Shown here piece by piece: positions 2,617-17,131 of a stretch of DNA of 64,000 bases; the first letter of the stretch is position 1; every line of letters starts with the position of its first letter. The stretch lies in sequence record NC_048047.1. One strand, written 5' to 3'. Below the pieces are notes generated by a model. It did no database searches and was not told the DNA's origin. It worked only from the letters and a program-made list of their open reading frames with translations. Both the position numbers and the translations under genes were made by a program.

Positions 2617-2917
2617 CTGACCCATTTTAGGGTTAATGTCGCGCCCTAACCCGATTTTGGGCGACACCCAGGCGAACGGGCGCCGGCCGGGTCGTGATCC
2701 CCGGCCGGTGGGTCAGTGGAGCAGCCAGAGCAGAAACGCCAGCGCCGCCAGTGACCAGCCGTTCAGCAATTTCAGGGTGGGCGCCTCTCTCGTCTGCCGT
2801 GGCCGCTCGCCACCCCTCATTCATCGCATACAAGAAAACTGTTGCCAAGCCCCAAAGATCGCTTGACAGCATAAAAGCCCAATGCGACAAGAGGCCATCC
2901 AAACGGGAGACACCCCA

Positions 2918-12988: not shown

Positions 12989-13104
12989 GACCGCCTCCCA
13001 CGTCTAGGGCTGTCACGAATCCCCCCATCTATGACAGCCCAGACGCCCGTTTAGTCTTCCCTGTACTCTATTGCGCCAGTATCGGCGCGGAAAGTGATGC
13101 GCCT

Positions 13105-13167
13105 ATGAAGCTCCTCGAAGGTGGCGGACTGCTGGCCCTGTGCTTCCTTTTCTGGCTCCTCCACTGA
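13105..13167 (+). CDS. 20-aa hydrophobic micropeptide MKLLEGGGLLALCFLFWLLH, copy 1
   Basis: The identical peptide is encoded at 16757-16819 despite 12 nucleotide differences, none of which changes the peptide. Confidence 0.8.
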   Translation: MKLLEGGGLLALCFLFWLLH

Positions 13168-13231
13168 CAAGGCTGTTGACAGCATAAAGGCACTATGCGA
13201 AAAGGGGTCATCGCCACCGGAGACACCCGCG

Positions 13232-15985: not shown

Positions 15986-16756
15986 ATGGACCTGACCACG
16001 TTTTCGGCCTCGGCTGAATTTGTTCTCTGCAACAAGCCGGTGAAGATCACCGTCAAGCCCGCCGGCCGACCGCTCTACCTGTCGTTTTCCATCGAACAGA
16101 TCGGCATGATCGGCGGTAGCGACGAATTGATGAGCGAGGCCGAACAACACGACGTTGAGGACTTGGTGACGGTCTTGACCATCGCCGACGTCCTGTCCCT
16201 CAAGCCCATCGAGACCTATAACGACGAAGACCGCGACGCCGTCGAGAGCGTGCGCTATGCGCTGATCATGCTCAACGGCGAGCGCTACGCTTCGGCCGTC
16301 GCGTTCGAGGATGTCGGCGAGGCCGATTTTTCCAATCGCGACGACACCATTGACACCCGCCAAATCGTCGAGCGGGTCGAGGTGCTTCGGAGCGCCCTGG
16401 AGACGGCCGGCGTCGAGACCGGCGACCTCGCCGCCCTGGAAGCCCTCGACGAAGAAGAGGCCGTGACGGACCAAGACCAGCGCGAGACCTTCAACGAGAT
16501 TCGCGAGGAATATCTGATCCTGGCGCGCATGGTCGAGGAGGGCGCCAACTACGGCGAGGATTGGACGTTCGGCGCCACCCTGGTCCGCGAATCCTACTTC
16601 ACCGAGTTCGCGCAAGAAGAGTGCGAAAGCCTGGGCTACATCGCCAAGGACTTCCCGTCGTGGATTTCCATCGACTGGGAAAAGACCGCCAACACGATGA
16701 AATCCGACTATACCGAAATCGACTTTGACGGCGTGAGCTACTACGTTCGCGCCTAG
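15986..16756 (+). CDS. Acidic ArdA-like antirestriction (DNA mimic) protein
   Basis: The C-terminus FTEFAQEECESLGYI...ISIDWEKTANTMKSDYTEIDFDGVSYY matches the ArdA C-terminal pattern; the protein is very acidic. Confidence 0.6.
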   Translation: MDLTTFSASAEFVLCNKPVKITVKPAGRPLYLSFSIEQIGMIGGSDELMSEAEQHDVEDLVTVLTIADVLSLKPIETYNDEDRDAVESVRYALIMLNGERYASAVAFEDVGEADFSNRDDTIDTRQIVERVEVLRSALETAGVETGDLAALEALDEEEAVTDQDQRETFNEIREEYLILARMVEEGANYGEDWTFGATLVRESYFTEFAQEECESLGYIAKDFPSWISIDWEKTANTMKSDYTEIDFDGVSYYVRA

Positions 16757-16819: not shown

Positions 16820-17131
16820 CCCCGGCCGGCGTCCATGACCTGGGCGCCGGCCTTTTCTTTGCGCCGCGATCGGGGTTAACCTTAAGGCGGCGTTAAGGTT
16901 AACGGCGGGCCTGGGAGGAAAGGCGTCAAGGCCGCGAGCTAGGATTACACGCGATGGCTTAGCCGGCGTCCAGCCGGCGGCGCCTTCGACCACCGCGAGG
17001 CGGCCTTGACCCTCGTAATCTCGCCGACCCGTCGCCCGGTGTCAACCGTTTTCTTTCTCCAAGAATTCTGTTGACACGCATCGAAGCCCTATGCGAGAAA
17101 GGGTCATCTTCAACGCCTGGAAAGAAAATCC

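Follow-up and report, generated by a model that had tools for sequence, protein, structure and literature searches.

Three unannotated 20-codon micro-genes in the direct terminal repeat of Caulobacter jumbo phage CcrBL9 and the predicted membrane micropeptide that they encode

Introduction

IbsC, the smallest type I toxin, consists of 19 amino acids that are almost all part of a transmembrane helix, and small membrane proteins regulating larger membrane complexes have been reviewed as a class (PMC12648545). Among phage-encoded peptides, PfsE of the Pseudomonas filamentous phage Pf4 is an inner-membrane protein of 30 aa with a conserved aromatic motif, YxWGW, which binds PilC and blocks superinfection (PMC8764522). 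For phage T5, a predicted membrane protein has been noted in the first-step-transfer terminal repeat (PMC3556154). The genes in the direct terminal repeats (DTRs) of phiCbK-like phages have no assignable function, and predicted CtrA sites have previously been reported in these repeats (PMC9437464).

Caulobacter phage CcrBL9 (MH588546.1, 322,272 bp) is a lytic jumbo phage (Dolichocephalovirinae, genus Bertelyvirus), whose DTR is annotated at positions 1-22260 (22,260 bp) and repeated at the right end, and every gene annotated in this region is a hypothetical protein. The window analysed here, a stretch of 64,000 nucleotides, corresponds to bases 1-64000 of this genome with identical coordinates. 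In this work, we followed up an original prediction, made from the letters of the window, of a micropeptide encoded twice in the DTR, by comparative genomics, RNA folding, profile and pattern searches, and structure prediction.

Compared with the systems described above, the CcrBL9 peptide resembles PfsE in that both are very small, are encoded by a phage, are predicted to reside in the inner membrane and contain conserved aromatic residues; as to the setting, PfsE targets the pilus platform PilC, and phiCbK-like phages enter through pili and flagella. There is, however, no sequence similarity between the two, the CcrBL9 peptide lacking YxWGW and having a single Trp or Phe at -4 from the C-terminus, while PfsE belongs to a chronic filamentous phage and is encoded by a single copy. 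With the small membrane regulators, the predicted peptide would share, by analogy, the format of a single-helix micro-protein that binds membrane partners, although its 20 aa place it at the extreme low end of this class and no homology was found. The T5 membrane protein lies among the pre-early genes of a long terminal repeat, and it is only by analogy that the CcrBL9 DTR could be called pre-early.

Results

Two micro-ORFs encode one peptide and differ by silent changes

The two ORFs, referred to as copies 1 and 2 (Table 1), were reported in the original prediction to be unannotated and to encode the same peptide. Both statements were confirmed: each translates to (M/V)KLLEGGGLLALCFLFWLLH*, and neither is annotated in GenBank MH588546.1. 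The count of differences also proved exact, with 12 of 63 nt differing between the copies, of which ten changes are synonymous and the others swap the start and the stop codon, leaving 0 amino-acid changes (pS 0.62, pN 0-0.02). Nine of the ten internal differences fall on third codon positions and the tenth on the first position of a CTC/TTG leucine pair, whereas the same differences read in the five other frames yield 7-10 amino-acid changes each. When ten changes were placed at random, the peptide was kept in 0 of 200,000 trials, regardless of whether the base-change spectrum was preserved.

Alignment of the two copies together with their flanks revealed that the similarity is bounded by the start and stop codons, the flanks being unrelated, and the longest identical run shared by the copies is only 16 nt. 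For comparison, copy 1 of CcrBL9 (BL9) and its orthologue in phage BL47 differ at four residues, at a pS similar to that of copies 1 and 2. We infer that the identity of copies 1 and 2 may reflect selection that favours one product and, at the same time, disfavours recombination between these direct repeats, which are spaced by 3.65 kb.

Table 1. Location of the micro-ORFs and of associated features in the CcrBL9 terminal repeat
Feature	Position	Strand	Remarks
Copy 1, 20-codon micro-ORF, ATG..TGA	13105..13167	+	encodes MKLLEGGGLLALCFLFWLLH; between gp022 and gp023
Inverted repeat/hairpin GGGCTGTCA..TGACAGCCC	13001..13045	+	about 65 nt upstream of copy 1; fold z = -6.05
Early-type promoter of gp023	13176..13200	+	8 nt downstream of copy 1 stop; families D3/D4
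gp031, 256 aa, phrog_25535 (unknown function)	15986..16756	+	copy 2 appended to its end
Copy 2, 20-codon micro-ORF, GTG..TAA	16757..16819	+	peptide identical to copy 1 (MKLLEGGGLLALCFLFWLLH)
Intrinsic terminator, 12-bp GC stem + TTTTCTTT	16824..16862	+	4 nt after copy 2; z = -4.05
Copy 3, diverged paralogue, CTG..TGA	2713..2775	-	encodes LKLLNGWSLAALAFLLWLLH; found by six-frame scan
Copy 3 promoter-like element TTGGCAAC-N10-TATGCGA	2824..2848	-	variant of the DTR early motif; conserved in SC and BL47
Copy 3 5'UTR region	2784..2813	-	conserved stem-loop GTGGC-GAGCG-GCCAC at 2799-2813
Hairpin after copy 3	2683..2708	-	4-5 nt past the stop; z = -2.4 to -4.1
DTR palindromes (examples)	4997, 6484, 7153, 8828, 13554, 15522, 16876, 21802		
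DTR promoters (examples)	2863, 3567, 5060, 6153, 6536, 7215, 8356, 8879, 10387, 10975, 13176, 13649, 15094, 15904, 17062, 17907, 18815		

Regulatory modules of the terminal repeat

The DTR of CcrBL9 contains repeated modules composed of a terminator, a palindrome, a promoter-like motif and a 5'UTR, which are near-identical from unit to unit. The palindrome, GTTAACCTTAA-N7-TTAAGGTTAAC, is present in about 12 copies and contains the boxes TTAA-N7-TTAA, which correspond to the predicted CtrA sites reported previously (PMC9437464). The promoter-like motif, AGAAAnCTGTTGACA(C)GCAT..CCTATGCGAGAAAGG, occurs in at least 25 copies, and the 5'UTR ends in ..GGGAGACACCCC-ATG. A search with the early promoter motif gave 19 matches against 5.5 expected, all the exact copies lying inside the DTR; no description of this promoter consensus was found in the literature. 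The DTR is presumed to be transcribed early by the host RNA polymerase.

Rfam and tRNA scans of the 64-kb window were empty. Further along the genome, an 87-nt tRNA-Lys(ctt), unusually long for a Lys tRNA, is called by both ARAGORN and GenBank at 81826-81912. The terminal repeat of BL47 is longer (30,174 bp) because of a three-gene unit of about 885 bp that is repeated five times in tandem (gp050-gp064; MZ574432.2, 25791-29984).

Each copy lies in a different genomic context

Copy 1 starts with ATG in BL9, CcrSC (SC), BL47 and RB23, and in-frame translation upstream of it is not conserved between the two clades, BL9/SC and BL47/RB23. Its GC content at third codon positions (GC3) is 0.79. Upstream, neither a promoter of its own type nor a canonical Shine-Dalgarno (SD) sequence was found, a weak (A)GAAAG being located 10-12 nt before the start; downstream, there is no hairpin or terminator, and the gp023 promoter comes next. 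It is likely that copy 1 shares the transcript of the gp019-gp023 unit. The hairpin that had been pointed out upstream of this copy was borne out by its folding energy (Table 1); its stem is invariant, being kept in BL47, its loop is variable, and it has no T-run.

Copy 2 directly adjoins gp031, its GTG following the TAG stop of this gene in frame in both BL9 and SC, and it is probably translationally coupled to gp031 by termination-reinitiation. Within the first 20 kb, no terminator-like site is stronger than the terminator behind copy 2, and gp032, located after this terminator, has a separate promoter. In BL47/RB23, the gp031 homologue is 43% identical, with its C-terminus conserved up to the stop, and ends with TAA; copy 2 is absent, and the same terminator sits 6 nt after the stop codon of the homologue. 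Copy 2 is accordingly an exact 63-nt presence/absence, with 20 codons located between the gp031 TAG and the terminator in BL9 and SC. PHROGs searches with the neighbouring genes returned only families of unknown function.

The copy 2 terminator is separated from the gp032 promoter by a non-coding element of about 95 nt (16925-17020), which is almost invariant between BL9/SC and BL47/RB23, whereas the flanking proteins are only about 43% identical. This element is closed by GTCAAGGCCGC...GCGGCCTTGAC and, when folded as the + strand, gives z = -2.67; Rfam contains no match to it, and it displays no significant complementarity to the micro-ORF mRNAs.

Copy 3, in turn, is a stand-alone unit with its own promoter, SD, CTG start and hairpin. 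The CTG start is kept in BL9, SC and BL47, and is preceded at 7-8 nt by the SD-like sequence GAGAGG (2784-2789; AGGAGG in BL47). Further upstream, a block of about 35 nt is conserved at 38, 37 and 36 nt from the CTG in BL9, SC and BL47, respectively; since the same nucleotides are thereby read in three phases, the block is non-coding. An in-frame ATG at 2820 gives a 35-aa form of copy 3 and, more generally, a longer form of 33-37 aa could also arise in each lineage from an in-frame upstream ATG or GTG. The stem of the hairpin after copy 3 comprises 9 bp in BL9/SC and 12 bp of a different sequence in BL47, the loop GGAUCACGA being common to both and the stem changes compensatory; these hairpins were folded individually, and a MAFFT alignment across the clades failed to register the differing stems. 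A role of copy 3 as leader of the downstream BL47 'gp005c' was considered and rejected, gp005c having the appearance of a spurious Arg-rich ORF.

Downstream of copy 3 extends a 1.25-kb unannotated stretch (1463-2712) with a GC content of 0.57 and about 76% identity to BL47, which carries TTAAGGTTAAC motifs and, at about 2520-2620, short repeats of the GATTTTCG type; the stretch may serve as an origin or give rise to a non-coding RNA.

Conservation and selection across Bertelyvirus

Whole-genome pattern scans (IMG/VR; CcrBL9, CcrSC) located three copies per DTR and none outside it, which amounts to six copies per genome, as all three lie in the DTR. In the BL47/RB23 clade, copy 1 reads MRLIEGGGFLALCFLLWLLH and copy 3 reads LKLLNGWSLLTLAFLLWLLH; both loci are at least 99.6% identical in 7/7 genomes of this clade, where they are unannotated, so that, together with BL9 and SC, copies 1 and 3 are present in 9/9 known Bertelyvirus genomes. 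Comparison of the BL9 and BL47 orthologues gave a pN of 0.16 and a pS of 0.69 for copy 1, and a pN of 0.10 and a pS of 0.51 for copy 3, with replacements that are all conservative (K/R, L/I, L/F, F/L, A/L and A/T), which again indicates purifying selection. The GC3 of the micro-ORFs (0.79-0.89) is coding-like, agreeing with the 0.84 +/- 0.04 of the annotated DTR genes and clearly exceeding the intergenic GC content of 0.55-0.62.

Among the paralogues, nucleotide divergence reaches 40% while the architecture of the peptide is retained, and start and stop codons are kept in every copy, the starts being ATG, GTG and CTG (TTG in the Colossusvirus relative described below). The peptide has been preserved as a protein in two phage genera, and the three loci are therefore genuine micro-genes. 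Selection on the peptide, which the original prediction had deduced from copies 1 and 2, is likewise upheld by three paralogues, nine Bertelyvirus genomes and the Colossusvirus relative.

A relative in Colossusvirus and searches for further members

CcrColossus gp022 (AFU87892.1) is annotated as a 24-aa 'hypothetical protein' in the DTR of that phage; it reads (M)RFIEHVLEGSGLIFAIVILFLLH, has AAGGAG 5 nt before its TTG start, and is followed by a terminator. CcrPW harbors a syntenic, unannotated counterpart, RFIEHMLEGSGVLFAIVILFLLH, with the SD AAGGAG; the two genes differ at 11 of 75 nt, resulting in three conservative replacements. As with the Bertelyvirus copies, the location of gp022 is the DTR of a jumbo phage infecting Caulobacter, and the gene has an SD of its own and a terminator after it. 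At the protein level, the CcrColossus and CcrPW peptides share with those of Bertelyvirus an M-R-[FL]-I-E start (copy 1 of BL47 begins with MRLIE), a G-x-G hinge, a 12-residue hydrophobic run, an L-L-H-stop end, and a distance of exactly 14 residues from Glu to His. In contrast, CcrColossus gp022 is 4 residues longer (HVLE insert), has Phe in place of the invariant Trp, starts with TTG, and is present in one copy per DTR instead of three. Judging from 20-24 residues of sequence and the shared architecture, gp022 is very probably a true homologue of the Bertelyvirus micropeptide; it was not detected by an HMM built from Bertelyvirus sequences only.

The peptide had been put forward as new, which holds insofar as it is unannotated in Bertelyvirus, but a 24-aa relative, gp022, had already been annotated; no mention of these micro-ORFs was found in the literature. 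Our results give good support to the view that the DTR micropeptide of Bertelyvirus and Colossusvirus constitutes a new family within a known kind, that of small hydrophobic phage proteins.

Wider searches for members were performed with degenerate DNA patterns in place of protein-database queries. The family architecture (M-[KR]-[LF]-[LI]-[EN], Gly-rich hinge, 11-12 hydrophobic residues, L-H-stop, location in the DTR) fits 11/11 sequences examined, and the corresponding DNA pattern matched only BL9, SC, PW and Colossus in IMG/VR, with 0 false positives. Among 185,579 species genomes, the pattern gave five matches, all attributed to chance by inspection, about 6 being expected. Two further patterns gave only chance matches outside the known members: a stricter one matched no genome, and its one metagenome match was an alternative frame of a larger AT-rich ORF, while a first C-terminal pattern matched 8 metagenomic viral contigs that were chance matches, displaying low GC, internal stops and no N-terminal motif.

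A profile HMM detected no member in the DTRs of phiCbK (first 14 kb) and CcrBL10, and blastn with the 63 nt retrieved only BL9 and SC, the remaining matches being short and due to chance. The result of tblastn with the 20-mer against 50,697 phage records was empty even for CcrBL9 and thus uninformative, probably owing to the low-complexity filter and the short query. Four peptide variants had no Pfam or NCBIfam match at E<=10, and the micropeptide had no PHROGs match at E<=10 and no PDB match. On the basis of the pattern and HMM searches, the range of the family appears to be limited to jumbo phages of Caulobacter from two genera.

Other very small hydrophobic proteins are encoded in these terminal repeats, namely CcrBL9 gp003 (1307-1462, 51 aa), phiCbK gp001 (1002-1193, 63 aa) and phiCbK gp003 (1586-1690, 34 aa), the last also having a terminator after it; none of them is recognisably related to the micropeptide. 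In CcrColossus, an unannotated 18-codon hydrophobic ORF, MIKLTPLILAALILWALW, lies on the minus strand between gp002 and gp001 (JX100810, 2291..2235), and is absent from CcrPW.

Predicted properties of the peptide

That the peptide is short and very hydrophobic, as first proposed, agrees with its 20 aa, its GRAVY of 1.3-1.5 and the single helix in which it was modelled; its Wimley-White octanol transfer is favourable as well. Its N-terminus is polar (M-[KR]-[LF]-[LI]-[EN]) and is followed by a hinge rich in glycine (GGG or GWS), a hydrophobic run of 11-12 residues and a C-terminal Leu-His, with L3, G6, L12, L15, W17 (F in Colossus), L19 and H20 as invariant positions. The AlphaFold model, made on the 35-aa ATG-extended form of copy 3 only, displays one helix over the conserved 20 residues (pLDDT 85-93) and a disordered N-terminal extension; this helix constitutes weak evidence, since short hydrophobic sequences are routinely modelled as helices.

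A lipoprotein signal peptide was also considered, and rejected: LALC has Leu at position -1 of the lipobox L-[AS]-[GA]-C, and the lipobox is ruled out because the Cys is not conserved, being Ala in copy 3 and Ile in Colossus. Given that only 14 residues extend from the polar E/N to the His, which is short for a bilayer span, the peptide could bind a protein groove instead.

Discussion

With a probability that we put at roughly 0.6, the product of the three loci is a micropeptide that is translated from early DTR units, resides in the membrane as a single helix and acts in trans. In the mechanism that we propose, the three loci would be translated as peptides of about 20 residues, the genes being expressed, presumably early, from the promoter-dense DTR, each copy by its own route; early expression of the copies would fit this density of promoters. 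The peptide would form one short alpha-helix that partitions into the host inner membrane, where it may act in trans on a membrane-located host function, and its dose would be raised by the three paralogues and doubled by the terminal repeat. Candidate targets are an envelope machine, such as the pilus and flagellar entry route of phiCbK-like phages, or membrane integrity or potential; by analogy, IbsC and PfsE show that there is precedent for peptides of this size doing either job. More speculatively, the outcome might be superinfection exclusion, or the inhibition of a transporter or protease.

A type I toxin-antitoxin-like module, in which an RNA antitoxin and the structure of the mRNA would repress the translation of a membrane-depolarising toxin, is an unlikely alternative. 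The peptide matches the type I toxin class in size and hydrophobicity (PMC12648545), sharing with IbsC-type toxins both its length and a near-total hydrophobic helix. The translation signals of copy 3 are weak or structured, as in such toxins, this copy being monocistronic, with a 5'UTR that is both conserved and structured and with CTG as a weak start, and in the fold of the mRNA from Colossus, the 3' part of the ORF is paired to the SD (z = -2.81). The likeness to Ibs in the original prediction therefore stands for size and hydrophobicity, but not for kinship: there was no match to a toxin-family HMM in Pfam or NCBIfam, nor to PHROGs, at E<=10, and no antisense partner was found. Of the promoter types scanned, neither an early-type nor a sigma-70-type promoter lies antisense to any copy, and the DTR yielded no candidate for a complementary RNA. 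Moreover, unlike stand-alone toxin-antitoxin loci, two of the three copies (1 and 2) are located within or behind ordinary operons, and an addiction module would have no obvious role in a lytic jumbo phage.

The remaining explanations, namely a leader peptide, amber readthrough and a non-coding element, are weak. A 20-mer stays inside the ribosome exit tunnel until its release, and a cis-acting leader or arrest peptide would stall the ribosome at the stop codon beside a hairpin and so set the read-through between units, which we regard as quite unlikely. In favour of such a peptide, the stops of copies 2 and 3 lie 3-5 nt before a stable hairpin; the Colossus micro-ORF is followed by a terminator and, about 20 nt on, by gp023, with no promoter between, the order ORF-terminator-gene being found likewise in PW; and a sensor acting in cis would also show conservation of the peptide in multiple copies regardless of context. 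However, copy 1 is followed by a promoter instead of a hairpin, copy 3 lacks a credible downstream gene, the stop codons vary (TGA, TAA), and both MFE and centroid folds consist of independent hairpins with no competing antiterminator pairing. The closeness of stop and hairpin is ordinary compaction, because the BL47 terminator is equally close to the stop of the gp031 homologue, where there is no micro-ORF. The more specific proposal that the 20-mer is a cis-acting nascent-peptide sensor, in which termination paused by the hairpin gates read-through between DTR early units, is distinctly improbable; if true, it would describe a self-contained 63-bp cassette that could go behind any gene, as copy 2 does behind gp031.

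It is very improbable that copy 2 serves as an amber-readthrough extension placing a C-terminal membrane anchor on a fraction of gp031. The GTG does follow the gp031 TAG directly and in frame in BL9 and SC, and the BL47 homologue, with no copy 2, ends in TAA; on the other hand, in-frame adjacency has a 1-in-3 chance of occurring, the start position of copy 2 is retained as GTG, and separate starts are found at copies 1 and 3 and at the Colossus gene, all of which are free-standing. In addition, both clades conserve the C-terminal end of gp031 right up to its stop, and a CUA anticodon occurs in 0 of the 23 phage tRNAs detected within the first 114 kb. Finally, a repeated non-coding DNA or RNA element (a protein-binding site, a recombination site or a structured RNA) that is open by chance is essentially excluded, even though the DTR is full of repeated non-coding motifs and copy 2 alone has some excess RNA structure (z about -2.1), because all substitutions between copies 1 and 2 are silent in a single one of the six frames and no RNA structure is conserved, 7 of 9 63-nt units having no excess structure (the exceptions, both of them copy 2, reach z values of about -2.1 to -2.3), there being no Rfam match, and paralogues up to 40% diverged in nucleotides keeping their peptide architecture and their start and stop codons.

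Returning to the trans-acting membrane micropeptide, a gene of 20 codons can be called here on the strength of the comparative signal alone, the three paralogues serving as internal replicates. Genes so small escape every annotation pipeline: three were overlooked in nine genomes, and the relative was called only in CcrColossus. Identical peptides encoded with near-saturated silent divergence in one genome provide an example of selection holding a product constant. Should the micropeptide prove to be an effector that acts in the membrane during host takeover or superinfection exclusion, it would rank with the smallest phage effectors described and would also be easy to study, as it can be chemically synthesised and its host, Caulobacter crescentus, is a harmless model organism; moreover, its gene would be the first to be given a function in the large terminal repeats that phiCbK-like phages carry (PMC9437464).
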